Assembly (NCBI GenBank): GCA_002269645.1
Contig: NIVC01000109.1
Location: 124,001-188,000, forward strand
DNA: 64,000 nucleotides
Direction of reading: 5' to 3'
Source of the DNA: Macrostomum lignano
Lineage: Eukaryota
Shown: positions 181 to 20,590 of the stretch, piece after piece
Layout of the letters: each line of letters starts with the position of its first letter
How positions within the stretch are numbered: position 1 is the stretch's first letter
Translations under genes and position numbers: made by a program
Notes under the pieces: model-generated
What the model was told of the DNA's origin: nothing
Seen by the model: only the letters and a program-made list of their open reading frames with translations
Database searches by the model: none

Positions 181-3100
181 GACTATCGGTGTCATTATGC
201 AGCCATAGTGAAGAACGACTTCGCCATCAGGAAATCCAAGGTCATCACACCTCACCTAACAATGCTGCAGGCGTTGGCGTCAACATAACAGCCAAGGAGA
301 TTTCTGACGCATGGCAATCTTCCGCATTCAGACAAGGCTGCTTCCGTGACTCATCAGCCAGACCATGGCAATGGGACTATTTTCACTCCAGCAACACTCC
401 AGATGCTTCTGGCTACCAGTGGCTGCTTGTGAAACTTGCTCGATGTGTTTCAGTGCGCTCTGTGATTGTCCACCGAAGGAATGTCGGTGAGTTGTCAATT
501 TCAAGTAGCTGTTTAAACTAAATATTCAAATGAACAGCCATTTTTAGATTAACCATGCTTGAATCAATAGCTATGGTTTCAGACAAAGTCAGGGCCCAGG
601 GCATCGAGGTTCTGCTCGGCCACCAGATGCCGGCAGGTCTGACTGAGAGTCCACTTGACTGCATCGCGAGTTTCAACCACAGTCTGACCGAATTTTACCT
701 GTGCGGAGTCACTGGAAACTTTGGCAACTCGAACTTTTCATACAAAATGACCTGCGCAACTCGGAATTATTCCAAGGTTTGGCACCCGCTTACTGGATCC
801 ATTCGAGATTCGAACTCGCTATCCTCACTTTTGAATCCCATTGCAGCTGCCGAGGTTCGTGTTGCTGAGGAAATTCGTTGCCAATGCAGCCGACAAGTAC
901 ATGAACTTCGTGATGGTGGAACTTGAGGAAGATGAACAAGATGAAGCACAGGAGTCTGGCTGCTTTAGAGAATACTTTTGCAAGCCAGAAGGCAGAAAAA
1001 GATGCTCTGTTGAACAATTGTCAAAACTGACGCAAAGTGACAAGGTGATGGTTAAAGAGTCGCTGCCATGCAAGACAGAGAAGCCTGACTCAGTGAACTG
1101 CAGCATCAGAACCCGTAGCGGTGACGTCATTCCCTTGAGAATCGTAAGGACTGAATCGAAATCAAATTGCAGTGTAAGATGTAAAACAGTATTACATTAA
1201 AGTTTCCCTTCAATCTTACAGAAGACTTATAGACCCAGCTTCCTGATTCTGAACGACACTACCGTAACTTGGGAACTGCACGGTGCGTCACTGCAGTGCC
1301 GGCACAGCTGCACTGATGGCACTCTGGCGGTGACTTCACAGACGTTGGGACTCCGCGGTTGGAAGTCGATCAGTGAGTTCTGAATGTGGGGCGTTGACTC
1401 TATTCTGGGAACTTTTTGGGGAAGTAGCGAGCTGTTTGTGTTCTGGGGATTATTGGGGAAGTAGCGAGCTGTTTGTGTTCTGGGAAAATTTTGGGGAAGT
1501 AGCGAGCTGTTTGGGTTCTGGGGAATTATTTTGGGGAAGTAGCGAGCTGTTTGTGTTCTGTGGAATCTTTTAGGGAAGTAGCGAGCTGTTTGTGTTCTGG
1601 GGAATTTTTGGGCAAGTAGCGAGCTGTTTGTGTTCTGGAAAATTTTGGGGAAGTATCAAGCTCATTGGCCCCTGTGTTGCGCATAAACTCGGAAAATTTC
1701 AGAAATCCCATCGTCCATTCAGCTGAACCTTGGCTTCACTAAGTACTGGGTGGTCAACAGTACTGCAGTTTTCACATTCATCACTCAAGGCTCGTTTCCA
1801 ATGCCTGTGCACAAGTGTTCGGTGGCAATTTCTGTATCGAGTTCAAATGATTCGATTAAACAACTGAACCTGACATCTGAAGTGAGAATAAAACTTTCAA
1901 GAACACTTTTAGGCAAAATTTTCATTATCTGAATGGAAGAAATCTTTGACATTTTGAATTTTAGAAACTCACCACAAGGAGCAGAAATGCGAGCTTTGAC
2001 CTCATCTCGTACTTCAGCGTTCCAGTATTTCCGAGCTATCAGAAAGAAACATTATATTGCAGCATCGAGTGCAACAATAAGACCATAACAACAGTGTCAG
2101 CTGAGATACCTGAGATAAAAGGTGAGTCAGCTCTCACTACTGATTCACACAGCAGCAATTCTCATCCCACCAACGTCTCGAACCCTTCCAGAGCCCTGCA
2201 GGACTCGGTTTCTGCTTCCACCAGACTCCAGCTGGACAGACGGAGCGACTGTCAATCTGACAGCCGACTCATCTCAAGGGAACTGGGCGACAACCAGTCA
2301 TAGCTGCTTTCTGCAGTCGGAGGGAGTCCCGAACTCGACACTGCGGATTGTCTCTGTGAGTATTTTACAGTTTTATGGCTGAGTTGCGAAACCCGCAGAA
2401 AACAGCATGAGCTGAACTCATTCCAGAGCACAAACTCGAGCAGCACATTCTCAGTAACTGTGAGCAGACGGTGGGGCAGCAGCGCATCCGTTGCGTGTCT
2501 GGTGAATCAGTCGGGACTGATCGAGACCTGGGCCCGGCATCCGCTGCCAGCTGCTCTGTGTGAGTCACTTGGTGGACATTTGCTTGCGGCAGTAAAATAT
2601 GAGCTACGACGTATGACCAAGGACTGCTGAACAACTCCTGTTTACTAGTCCTTGCGTATGACCTGAATTAAAAGTGAAACTATAACATCGGAATCTTCAG
2701 GGTTGCTTTTAGAAAACTAAAATGCTCATCTCGTGAGGCTTGGTGGTGATGCCCAAAAAAGATCATTTTAACTGGCTAAACTCTATCATTTTTTGCTGTA
2801 GTTTTTATATTTGATAGGTAAACCCATACATGTATATGACAGTCAAGAAGCAGCAGGTGGCAAAGTGGCATTGCGATGCGTGTCGAACCTCAATAATTAA
2901 TGCACTTTAGGCAACAGCTGATCGAACCACGAATCGCTGATTCAAGCAAAGCAAAACTTGATTTAAAAATGATCACATGAAAAAGCTAAGCAGCAGACCC
3001 GCTCACACGCTCACCCATCACCACAAGACAGAAAGTTTGAAACAAATTAGATGCTGTAAACCGCCTTAAACTACACTATTAAAAATTAGCATGATTTATT

Positions 3101-18300: not shown

Positions 18301-20590
18301 CATCAGGGGCATGGCTAAAGCCCCTTGGTGCTGGCGCCCCTTGGTGCTGGCGCCCCTTGGTGCTGGCGCCCCTTGGTGCTGGCGCTAAGGGGCCCCTTGG
18401 TGCTAAAGCCCCTTGGTGCTAAAGCCCCTTGGTGCTAAAGCCCCTTGGTGCTAAAGCCCCTTGGTGCTAAAGCCCCTTGGTGCTAAAGCCCCTTGGTGCT
18501 AAAGCCCCTTGGTGCTAAAGCCCCTTGGTGCTAAAGCCCCTTGGTGCTAAAGCCCCTTGGTGCTAAAGCCCCTTGGTGCTAAAGCCCCTTGGTGCTAAAG
18601 CCCCTTGGTGCTAAAGCCCCTTGGTGCTAAAGCCCCTTGGTGCTAAAGCCCCTTGGTGCTAAAGCCCCTTGGTGCTAAAGCCCCTTGGTGCTAAAGCCCC
18701 TTGGTGCTAAAGCCCCTTGGTGCTAAAGCCCCTTGGTGCTAAAGCCCCTTGGTGCTAAAGCCCCTTGGTGCTAAAGCCCCTTGGTGCTAAAGCCCCTTGG
18801 TGCTAAAGCCCCTTGGTGCTAAAGCCCCTTGGTGCTAAAGCCCCTTGGTGCTAAAGCCCCTTGGTGCTAAAGCCCCTTGGTGCTAAAGCCCCTTGGTGCT
18901 AAAGCCCCTTGGTGCTAAAGCCCCTTGGTGCTAAAGCCCCTTGGTGCTAAAGCCCCTTGGTGCTAAAGCCCCTTGGTGCTAAAGCCCCTTGGTGCTAAAG
19001 CCCCTTGGTGCTAAAGCCCCTTGGTGCTAAAGCCCCTTGGTGCTAAAGCCCCTTGGTGCTAAAGCCCCTTGGTGCTAAAGCCCCTTGGTGCTAAAGCCCC
19101 TTGGTGCTAAAGCCCCTTGGTTCCAGAGTCTAGAGCCCCTTAAAAACCTCAAAACAGAGTAGCAGGTGTTTAGGCAACTCACCCAGAAGACGAGGAACAG
19201 GCTCCTTCGCTACTTCAGAGTAGATCGAATTACCATCCAGCTCAGCCTGACAACTGATATTACCGCCTTTGTAATCTTTTGTCACATTAACAGCGAATCG
19301 AGTACTGAGATCAAAGTATGAACGATCAGAACTGGACTCATTCTAAAATTTATTTGCAATTGAATGATTTCATATTTTGCCTATCTGTCCATAGGTTACT
19401 AAATAAATAAATAATAAAGCCAGAAGCTCACGGAAATTGGCCGGAACGTGTCTTTTCCCCTGTCAGGTCTGTCCAACCAGCATTTGTGTACAGGCAGGGG
19501 TCTTGAACTCTCGGTGCGGAATTCGAAAGTTGCTTGTCTACCAATCACCCAGTGCTCGGTGATGTTCACGTTGATAATTTGCAAATTAGGACCACCTGGG
19601 AAAGTTTTGGTTGTCATTTGTAGTTTTGCTAAGGGCATTCATAATAAATTAATGATTACACCTGCCGCAATGTACCAGATGTGCAACCGACAGCTCAGCC
19701 GCAGCTATTGCGCGGTGCATCTGAAGGTTGCGTACGGCTGTTCAGTCCAAGGACTGGGGGGGGGGTCGCCACACCCTCAATTACCCCAGCTAATGCTGGC
19801 ACCCATTTTACAGCTGGGTGAACTGAAGCATTGCAGAGTTAAGTGTCTTGCTCAAAGACAAAAATTGTTCCGAGTAGATCGAGGATCGAACTCCCGACCT
19901 TACAGCCGTGAGTCCAACGCTCTAACCACTGGACTACAACCCCTTAATACGGGGTTGAGACCCCTTAAAGGGACTAAGATTAGGAATCCAGAAGGTGAGA
20001 TTTGGAACTCAAAAGGTGAGATTCAGAATCAATGCAGAGTTAAGTGTCTTGCTCAAGGACACAAATTGATCGGGAATCGAACCCGCGACCTTTAAGTCGT
20101 AATCCAACGCTCTAACCGCTGGACTACAACCCATTCATACGCATTCATCTGAAAAAATCAAAATTCGGTCTTTCAGCTTACGAATTGATTTCTCCTGTGT
20201 CAATCGCAGAACCTTGATCGTTGTTTTGTTCTGCCCATTGCTGCAGCTCCATTCGCACCATAAGGTTGCTCCATCCATTTTCAGACTGACTTTGAACTTC
20301 GAGAGTCTTCGAGATTCGTTCGAATGACGGGTCTGTAAAGAAGGAAAATTCTAGAGTGCTTTCAGTTGAGCAATAATTATTTGCAATGAAAGCAAAGCAG
20401 GTCATACCGAGCCCAATTTTAAAGTGTAATTATTTAGCATTCTGATTTCGCATTTCACTGCAGTAGCTCTGCACGGCTGATCAGCTTGAATAATGATGTC
20501 ATCGTTCTGGTTCAAGCGCGACAAAGCGGCCTCCGAACAGGGGTTGGAAGGAGTGAGCCTGCAGAATTGAGCACCCTTGGCTGAAAGAAT
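9388..20590 (-). CDS. Paralogous ~8x Ig-like / TM receptor, tail-to-tail with the + strand gene; N-terminus (20590-~21400) unresolved
   Basis: Exons match the + gene in order and phase. Examples: DESKNSWNAT..VGGNPKPSHLCW (15265-15585) vs DEAKTQWTAT..LGGNPKPSHRCW; RSEIVTWSGQLLFGTDLLVTVVTDEGNPKP (13440-13576) vs PSNWISWSGQLVNGSDLNLTVETGEGNPKP; GGWIRKGRIVYRFAERQAEV (13177-13363) vs QGWIRRVRLIHRFSERQTEV. TM exon 9501-9649 (LAAVGGGLATVAAAVCALVAAAVWRRRR); last exon 9388-9411 (KYKYEDA*). Confidence 0.85.
10557..10908 (+). pseudogene. Harbinger Myb/SANT-like DNA-binding ORF2, internally deleted
   Basis: The N-terminus EADYIVNVLSKHPVLLSKSSTPVVKKNKEAA resembles helix 1-2 of Harbinger Myb-like proteins but stops before the conserved W. 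It joins via an acceptor-like ATTGCAG to a C-terminal coiled segment (LGNADLQRLVLLEQLRYVRLK) in another frame. Confidence 0.6.
11351..12451 (-). CDS. Harbinger DDE transposase (HARBI1/DDE_Tnp_4 family), one intron, one +1 frameshift
   Basis: Motifs GAIDCTHV, RKGFPSINVQ, WPGSVHDSRV, LLGDSGY and IERSFGQLKRRF, with all three catalytic D/D/E present. GT-AG intron at 11772-11863. An extra G in a G5 run at ~12057-12061 shifts the frame (real lesion or sequencing error). Confidence 0.9.
13580..15234. repeat. (TAG)n microsatellite, ~550 units, essentially perfect, intronic
   Basis: Direct reading; source of the poly-Y, poly-T and poly-L ORFs. Confidence 0.98.
18315..19120. repeat. 16-bp minisatellite (GCCCCTTGGTGCTAAA)n
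   Basis: About 50 near-identical units; the first few are GGCG variants. Confidence 0.97.
19680..19943 (-). mobile_element. tRNA-derived SINE, copy 3 (full length)
   Basis: Reverse complement of copy 2 along its whole length. Confidence 0.88.
20031..20132 (-). mobile_element. SINE 5' fragment (tRNA head plus start of core), copy 4
   Basis: Matches the first ~100 nt of copies 2 and 3. Confidence 0.75.

Follow-up and report, generated by a model that had tools for sequence, protein, structure and literature searches.

Two convergent genes of Macrostomum lignano for putative membrane receptors with immunoglobulin-like repeats, one of them with an F-type-lectin-like head

The free-living flatworm Macrostomum lignano serves as a genetic model in studies of regeneration, sexual selection and sperm competition. 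To our knowledge, almost no cell-surface recognition receptors have been characterised in flatworms. In this study, we analysed a stretch of 64,000 nucleotides (nt) of the M. lignano contig NIVC01000109.1 (positions 124,001 to 188,000, assembly GCA_002269645.1), hereafter referred to as the window. It contains two convergent (tail-to-tail) receptor genes, located at positions 271–6791 on the + strand and 20580–9388 on the − strand. With moderate confidence, we regard both as paralogs belonging to an M. lignano-restricted family of type I membrane receptors that function in recognition or adhesion and signal through a tyrosine (Tyr) tail.

The predicted head of the + strand protein is an F-type-lectin-like domain (FTLD). 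Roles of F-type lectins include opsonisation and sperm–egg binding in oysters, the latter performed by bindin with its F-lectin repeats (PMC12221842). Partner domains of the FTLD in reviews are CTLD, HTLD, pentraxin, CCP, FA58C and transmembrane (TM) segments; immunoglobulin (Ig)-like domains are not among them (PMC12221842). Fusion of the FTLD to Ig-like repeats and a TM helix sets the + strand protein apart from F-type lectins, and such an architecture is absent from those covered in the reviews (PMC12221842). A similar overall plan is seen in Drosophila Furrowed (CG9095), also a type I membrane protein in which a degenerate FTLD tips a long array of small modules. Among known TM proteins, it alone carries a degenerate FTLD, which was judged unlikely to bind fucose (PMC5712786, PMC12221842). 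In contrast to the + strand gene, Furrowed features a CTLD and CCP/sushi repeats but no Ig-like domains, and a sequence relationship was found for the FTLD only.

Amphioxus VCBPs combine Ig superfamily (IgSF) domains with a carbohydrate-recognition-type domain and constitute a lineage-specific expanded family. In Hydractinia, Alr1 and Alr2 are Ig-like TM proteins of type I; they are clustered and diverged and have Tyr-based motifs in the cytoplasmic part. The mollusc FREPs, again a lineage-specific expanded family, also join IgSF domains to a domain of the carbohydrate-recognition type (PMC12074976). The family found here appears to follow FREPs and VCBPs in this design principle, but those proteins are secreted, possess one or two Ig domains and carry fibrinogen-related or chitin-binding domains. 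The likeness to Alr is one of analogy only, as no sequence relationship was detected; unlike in the Hydractinia case, the window holds two genes only and the worm is solitary. The C2-set_2 IgSF adhesion receptors nephrin/SYG-2, Kirre/SYG-1/Rst and the nectins resemble the products of the window genes in that they, too, are of type I, string several Ig domains together and have Tyr in their tails. We regard the window genes as members of a real, lineage-specific lectin–IgSF receptor family; IgSF receptors and FTLD mosaics as such are already known kinds of proteins.

The exons of both genes were chained from the sequence by splice sites and phases. The + strand gene has 19 exons with 1078 codons and the − strand gene 17 exons with 886 codons, both stop-free once spliced. 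Intron phases are the same in 16/16 shared introns (0,1,0,1,0,1,0,1,0,1,0,1,1,0,1,0). This confirms what an earlier note on the stretch had claimed, namely two genes with about eight Ig-like domains each and matching phases. Several exon pairs of the + and − strand genes are identical in length, with 151/151 nt (exon D and its counterpart D'), 133/133 nt and 154/154 nt (exon N and the second exon of domain 6'), and one pair is near-identical (146/149 nt). The proteins are colinear domain by domain and show an identity of 36.7% over 866 residues in a global alignment, in line with the low identity that had been judged by eye. Domains 1, 2 and 4 are 22–30% identical and domain 3 is 51% identical; at 37% identity overall, synonymous sites between the genes are saturated. 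A TM exon followed by a last exon of 24–27 nt, encoding TVYYEADN or KYKYEDA before the stop codon, was found in both genes as described before. The statement that domains are mostly split into two exons holds for most of them; it does not apply to domain 7, which is a single exon in both genes, and domain 1 turned out to be divergent, with an E value of about 0.3 against the hidden Markov model (HMM) of the repeat unit.

Most junctions of the + strand gene are reproduced by database proteins of M. lignano. The UniRef entry A0A1I8J6H5 (P0005) is identical to amino acids (aa) 1–343, while P0024, P0006, P0019, P0017 and P0001 are 80–100% identical to further parts. The junctions covered (exon borders without a split codon marked by a slash) are RRNV/DKVR, NYSK/LPRF, PLRI/KTYR, WKSI-K-IPSS, EIPEIK-E-PC, RIVS/STNS, PAAL-Y-PVRS, NLLK/PSTC, KLF-L-LANN, LLQ/ETAPS and DVF-Y-AIRN. 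No in-frame ATG is present 5' of exon A, and the paralogs P0002, P0009 and P0010 start with a signal peptide just ahead of the homologous point, so that the signal-peptide exon of the + strand gene is expected upstream of window position 1. The gene features the following segments:

271–933, + strand: FTLD (exon A 271–486, exon B 583–776 and the first ~29 codons of exon C, 847–933)
934–1372, + strand: acidic/cysteine (Cys)-rich linker and divergent Ig-like domain 1 (exon C to 1143, exon D 1222–1372)
1703–2121, + strand: Ig-like domain 2 (exons E 1703–1881 and F 1965–2121; HMM E=4e-23; junctions in P0005 and P0006)
2192–2559, + strand: Ig-like domain 3 (exons G 2192–2355 and H 2427–2559; HMM E=6.5e-22)
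3415–3786, + strand: Ig-like domain 4 (exons I 3415–3563 and J 3633–3786; HMM E=4e-24; NLLKPSTC in P0019)
4384–4765, + strand: Ig-like domain 5 (exons K 4384–4523 and L 4606–4765; HMM E=1e-25; LFLLANN and LLQETAPS in P0019)
4839–5210, + strand: Ig-like domain 6 (exons M 4839–4984 and N 5057–5210; HMM E=1.3e-24; DVFYAIRN in P0019)
5611–5913, + strand: Ig-like domain 7 (single exon O; HMM E=5e-34)
6010–6419, + strand: Ig-like domain 8 (exons P 6010–6152 and Q 6236–6419; HMM E=1.1e-24)
6486–6673, + strand: TM helix (GSTVAVICCSLAVVAVAIVFGVL) and basic juxtamembrane cytoplasmic segment, as read from the sequence (exon R)
6765–6791, + strand: last exon of 27 nt, Tyr-acidic, TVYYEADN and stop codon (acceptor ttcttacag/ACT, phase 0)

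Domain 1 matches the repeat HMM weakly (E about 0.2–0.36), shows beta-strands in an AlphaFold2 (AF2) model at a pLDDT of 55–76 and has its junction (PLRI/KTYRPSF) backed by P0005 and P0024; segment 934–1372 is colinear with the − strand exons 20580–20182. The junctions of domain 3 were seen in P0001 (EIPEIKEPC, LRIVSSTNSS, PAALYPVRS), and the GGWIxR...TC unit of domain 8 also occurs in the paralog P0015. The TM segment consists of 23 hydrophobic residues followed by KRTRAAARGRR; the homologous exon of P0015 ends with KPADPS.

Relatives were searched with P0002, which comprises a signal peptide, the FTLD and five Ig units. Comparison with 1.84 billion (1.84e9) cluster representatives by phmmer yielded 22 relatives at E ≤ 1e-3, and all of the 11 clusters looked up derive from M. 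lignano (10 by exact look-up, plus P0001). The same source was obtained for 7/7 matches of an FTLD profile search, or for 9/9 together with the two matches of a word-index search with the + strand protein. As judged by these sequence searches, detectable relatives are restricted to M. lignano. Since there are only 22 of them and every checked source is M. lignano, the window genes are very unlikely to be conserved orthologues of nephrin, Kirre or hemicentin; the earlier note had already doubted that they are nephrin orthologues. The paralogs share the plan signal peptide, FTLD, Ig(n), TM segment and tail, and in some gene models (P0008, P0014) the tail of a copy continues directly into the head of its neighbour. 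The family is multi-copy and partly tandem, but the 64 kb contain only two genes, as the family HMM of the repeat unit matched precisely the exons of these two and no other place in a six-frame hmmsearch, and the locus of P0010 (PAA49974.1) has an unrelated neighbour and no adjacent paralog. A literature search yielded nothing relevant on Macrostomum lectin–immunoglobulin proteins and nothing under the locus tags of the family.

The Ig-like nature of the repeats was supported by profile and fold. A profile of 15 rows (14 repeat units of the two window genes and one paralog segment) matched SYG-2 (E=3.7e-6), nectin-4 domain 2 and many Ig constant domains among sequences of the PDB. Domain 7 of the + strand gene (window positions 5613–5912), modelled by AF2 with 23 family repeats, gave a pLDDT of 86.6, a pTM of 0.77 and seven strands A–G. 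In a Foldseek search with this model, 199 matches were obtained at E ≤ 1e-3, the top 50 listed were all Ig-fold, and the best TMq values (0.70–0.72) were found for Rst and SYG-1 D1–D2. By this model, the repeat is a seven-strand Ig beta-sandwich. Across 23–30 repeats, only two columns are invariant, namely C37 in strand C and C81 in strand F. The strand-C Cys stands in the context H-x-C-(W), at or beside the position of the canonical Trp. The canonical B-strand Cys is missing, with Val aligned to its counterpart in SYG-2, which suggests that the core disulfide was moved from B–F to C–F. That the canonical Ig disulfide has been lost systematically, with a Cys on strand C in its place, is of structural interest.

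The profile and fold matches could also be explained if the two genes were fast-evolving orthologues of the nephrin/SYG-2 and Kirre/SYG-1 (IRM) pair or of hemicentin, serving homo- or heterophilic adhesion, e.g. in the protonephridial filtration barrier. SYG-2 is the best PDB sequence match of the repeat profile, the best Foldseek TM-scores point to Rst and SYG-1, the number of eight Ig-like domains equals that of nephrin, and C2-set_2 is the sole Pfam family touched. True orthologues of nephrin and Kirre are recognisable across Bilateria; for P0002, however, no relative with E<1e-3 was traced outside M. lignano. No FnIII match was found with Pfam, and the ectodomain is fully tiled by the FTLD and eight Ig units of the family. 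In addition, the canonical B–F Cys pair is missing, the short tails lack YDxV and a PDZ-binding end, and nephrin, Kirre and the nectins have no lectin-like head. The window genes are paralogs and each other's closest relatives, and not a pair of nephrin and Kirre. There is no orthology signal, the resemblance to SYG-2 and Rst is limited to the level of a C2-type Ig domain, and we consider orthology very improbable.

The FTLD of the + strand protein was recognised by hmmsearch of six frames with E values of 7e-32, 4e-21 and 1e-10 for exons A, B and C, respectively. A profile of the FTLDs of seven family members was compared with 177,635 PDB sequences (E ≤ 10). It matched two entries only, both F-type lectins: 3CQO (striped bass FBP32; E=8.4e-8, with both of its FTLDs) and 1K12 (eel agglutinin; E=1.6e-3). 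Blocks aligned with these lectins are QSS.., H-S-S, (P/Q)WW/WL..L, an Arg resembling that of V.V.NR, and a trailing R...G.E..; two Arg of the basic triad and the nearby His are kept. For P0024, a 90%-identical copy, Foldseek on a low-confidence AF2 model (18-row alignment) retrieved 3CQO, 1K12 (probability score 1.00, TMt 0.44), the pneumococcal fucose module 2J22 and further jelly rolls of the galactose-binding-like type. Based on the profile comparison, the N-terminal domain is homologous to F-type lectins. The profile matches and Foldseek results show that the earlier call of a lectin-like head was right at the level of homology; its motif, given as RRNVGDKVR, has to be corrected to RRNV/DKVR at the exon junction.

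Both genes have a Tyr motif in the tail, as had been noticed before, and Tyr-acidic tails recur in paralogs. Examples are PTVYYYEEN in P0008, at the same place as TVYYEADN of the + strand gene, and DTYYEDPDEY and KYKEYYKD in P0014/P0020. The tail of P0010 contains VVYAQV and TEYTEI, about 27 residues apart. We take these two to match the ITIM and ITSM consensus, with a spacing that resembles vertebrate inhibitory receptors.

From these elements, a mechanism can be proposed. Each protein combines a predicted signal peptide with eight Ig-like domains and one TM helix; its tail is short and basic and ends in a Tyr-acidic motif encoded by a separate mini-exon. To this plan, the + strand gene adds an F-type-lectin-like jelly-roll head, which most family members are predicted to have; for the − strand gene, none was found in the window. 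The proteins may be located on the cell surface, where the rod of Ig domains could present the lectin-like head, and may act in recognition or adhesion. Ligand binding would be read out by Tyr phosphorylation of the YYE[A/D]-type tail and the recruitment of SH2 proteins. P0010-type paralogs would use an ITIM/ITSM-like pair in place of the YYE tail.

A number of observations weigh against this reading, and we begin with those on the head. The published fucose-binding motif is HX24RXDX4[R/K] (PMC5712786). Further criteria for a binding site are a vicinal Cys82–Cys83 disulfide, which stacks on fucose, and the calcium motif h2DGx (PMC5712786, PMC12221842). At the junction of exons A and B, the + strand gene reads R-x-N-x4-R with Asn for Asp, so that the Asp of RxDx4R is missing, with an H-x29 spacing ahead of it (29 residues between His and Arg vs 26 in the numbering of 1K12). 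Both Arg align with R79 and R86. At the same site, paralogs have RQEVSHR, RAAEPSR and RADSIVKGR. In 7/7 family members aligned, CC is absent at the position of RxDCCxxR, and a DG (h2DGx) motif is absent between WQSS and QWDYFH. HMMER pairs the family His with H47 of the eel lectin and not with H52; matching the H-S-S blocks, with an insertion of 3 residues, places it on H52 instead, which makes the alignment ambiguous. For the N-terminal half, AF2 gave a poor model (pLDDT 49.7), and single-sequence Pfam scans of the rough and the final proteins gave nothing significant for FTP/F5_F8. Given the degenerate binding site, fucose binding should not be assumed. From the motif, it is doubtful that the head still binds fucose; it may equally well have changed its sugar specificity or have a protein as ligand.

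The remaining points of this kind concern the repeats, the tails and the − strand gene. The Pfam family C2-set_2 (PF08205) is only grazed: summed over each whole protein, the scores are 22.8 and 22.9 bits (cut-off 21), but none of the individual stretches is significant, the best one being located in domain 6 of the + strand gene. The tails of the two window genes match no SH2, ITIM or ITSM consensus exactly. The model of the − strand gene requires one or two GC donors in addition to a weak donor (16617). A word-index search of protein collections with its N-terminal 322 aa found no protein, and its 5' exon is tentative only. The segments of the − strand gene are as follows:

21354–21420, − strand: candidate signal-peptide exon (MAYSFKQKWYIVCTLLMYNVDI), tentative (its phase-1 GTGAGT donor fits the phase-1 acceptor at 20580)
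20182–20580, − strand: divergent Ig-like domain 1' (exons 20580–20408 and 20332–20182; colinear with the second half of exon C and exon D of the + strand gene)
19183–19595, − strand: Ig-like domain 2' (exons 19595–19432 and 19342–19183; HMM E=1.2e-25)
17826–18220, − strand: Ig-like domain 3' (exons 18220–18033 and 17958–17826, GC donor at 17825; HMM E=4.9e-20)
17297–17663, − strand: Ig-like domain 4' (exons 17663–17527 and 17456–17297; HMM E=5.8e-25)
16849–17203, − strand: Ig-like domain 5' (exons 17203–17061 and 16981–16849; HMM E=4.9e-26)
15672–16766, − strand: Ig-like domain 6' (exons 16766–16618, weak donor, and 15825–15672; HMM E=6.3e-23)
15265–15585, − strand: Ig-like domain 7' (single exon; HMM E=3.7e-33; 42% identical to domain 7 of the + strand gene)
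13177–13576, − strand: Ig-like domain 8' (exons 13576–13440 and 13363–13177; HMM E=1.9e-22)
9501–9649, − strand: TM helix (LAAVGGGLATVAAAVCALVAAAVW), then RRRR and cytoplasmic segment (donor GC at 9500 or GT at 9509, both phase 0)
9388–9411, − strand: last exon of 24 nt, KYKYEDA and stop codon (acceptor caattgcag/AAG, phase 0 as in the + strand gene)

Probable GC–AG introns start at 17825–17824 (t/gcaagt) and 9500–9499 (aag/gcgagt). The former donor was accepted because the exon then measures 133 nt, as does exon H of the + strand gene, and the split codon encodes Tyr in both genes. In the 4 kb upstream of the exon at 20580, the candidate signal exon is the sole ATG-initiated hydrophobic open reading frame that has a good phase-1 donor; a word-index search for protein support found none. 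An FTLD belonging to the − strand gene was sought in the 64-kb window by tblastn with the + strand gene and P0002 and by profile hmmsearch of six frames, and none was found on the − strand, in agreement with what had been stated for this copy. On the + strand, an isolated open piece of 42 codons at 32564–32689 matches the C-terminal strands of the FTLD marginally (hmmsearch E=0.065, tblastn E=0.88); either a relic or a chance match is conceivable.

The lack of an FTLD in the window and the tentative first exon would also be expected if the − strand copy was an unexpressed or decaying duplicate, i.e. a young pseudogene without FTLD and 5' end, and only the + strand gene was functional. In the same direction point the GC and weak donors, introns that have taken up a 1.66-kb microsatellite, a minisatellite, short interspersed elements (SINEs) and a Harbinger remnant, and the finding of no − strand protein in the searched collections vs several for the + strand gene. 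The word-index search is insensitive, however. With the 1078-aa + strand protein it returned two matches only and missed the identical P0005, so that absence of the − strand gene from databases is weak evidence; annotations of M. lignano are also incomplete. GC–AG introns are legitimate. All 886 codons in 17 exons are open, and all phases and both invariant Cys per domain are kept at 37% identity, which is not expected after long neutral decay and argues for continued purifying selection on the − strand gene. We rate the pseudogene explanation as improbable.

Repeats are abundant in and around both genes. The window is repeat-rich eukaryotic DNA by composition, with GT–AG introns, SINE-like repeats and ~30 micro- and minisatellite arrays (40 rows in the output of TRF, some of them overlapping). 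A microsatellite of 1.66 kb at 13580–15236 (99% pure, 552 copies), read as (AGT)n on the + strand and (TAC)n on the − strand, occupies nearly the whole intron of the − strand gene between exons 15585–15265 and 13576–13440. The acceptor of the latter exon (tactactactcag) is located directly 3' of the (TAC)n array. The 3.5-kb intron preceding the TM exon of the same gene harbours frame-broken remnants of a Harbinger/PIF-type transposase (11354–12517, − strand; Pfam DDE_Tnp_4, E=1e-16 and 1e-14). ARAGORN called a tRNA-Arg(ACG) at 20061–20133 on the − strand, which resembles the head of a tRNA-derived SINE. SINE-like kin of this element were found near 3926–4150, 5290–5590 and 19650–19960, in introns of both receptor genes. 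Minisatellites are present in an intron of the − strand gene (18314–19121, 16 bp x50), in an intron of the + strand gene (1403–1662, 38 bp x7), between the 3' ends of the two genes (7090–7472, 14 bp x27) and at the start of the window (1–166, 21 bp x8).

Signs of recent duplication were found elsewhere in the family. On the contig NIVC01000712.1, two copies of a sister subfamily (P0014/P0020) are arranged head to tail in tandem, at 2336–5591 and 10001–14436; their protein identity is 91.5% over 497 codons kept after filtering. The N-terminal region of this pair looks like a shortened, degenerate FTLD. Nei–Gojobori estimates for the pair are about 0.10 for dS, about 0.043 for dN and about 0.44 for omega, which are rough values for a single pair with 79 substitutions after filtering. 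Such an omega is only mildly elevated and points to no more than relaxed constraint. Among recent copies of the + strand gene, the FTLD (95–98%) and domain 5 (99%) are best conserved and domain 2 (82%) least.

These data bear on a further explanation, in which the family would be a diversifying system for the recognition of non-self, pathogens or gametes, with a positively selected, polymorphic lectin head and distal Ig domains; in function it would be comparable to the FREPs of molluscs, the sperm bindin of oysters or Alr of Hydractinia. It would account for the lineage restriction and multiple diverged paralogs, for adjacent copies in the window and the tandem pair on NIVC01000712, and for the uneven divergence (domain 2 vs FTLD and domain 5 in recent copies; domains 1, 2 and 4 between the window genes). 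The omega of about 0.44 for the tandem pair and the ITIM/ITSM-like pair of P0010 would be compatible with it, and roles of F-lectins in immunity and fertilisation have been described (PMC5712786, PMC12221842). However, omega is below 1 and based on few substitutions after filtering, the FTLD is among the most conserved parts in recent copies and not the most variable, and the locus of P0010 lacks an adjacent paralog. M. lignano is not colonial, so that classical allorecognition has no obvious role. We assign this explanation a low probability and prefer the broader reading of a receptor family in recognition or adhesion.

A narrower proposal is that Macrostomum-specific, locally duplicating receptors, with a remodelled F-lectin head on a rod of Ig domains with C–F disulfides, serve pathogen, mate/gamete or self recognition through their Tyr tails, which in some members would carry ITIM/ITSM-like pairs. 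We put it forward as tentative and, in this specific form, rather unlikely. The idea of glycan sensing or self recognition in the earlier note appears to be contradicted by none of the findings it had named as decisive. Considering oyster bindin, gamete or mate recognition would be an equally conceivable role (PMC12221842). A receptor family that joins an F-lectin-type head to Ig repeats is a candidate for innate immune or for mating and gamete recognition and, if this was true, would represent an equivalent of FREPs, bindin or Alr that is new for flatworms. Its practical value today is an improved annotation, including a second gene apparently absent from the searched protein sets.

Exons of genes unrelated to the receptors were also observed in the window, at 28540–29079 on the − strand (RhoGEF DH domain), at 33159–37624 on the − strand (TM region of a Cys-loop neurotransmitter-gated channel) and at 45919–46449 on the + strand (claudin/PMP22-like protein).

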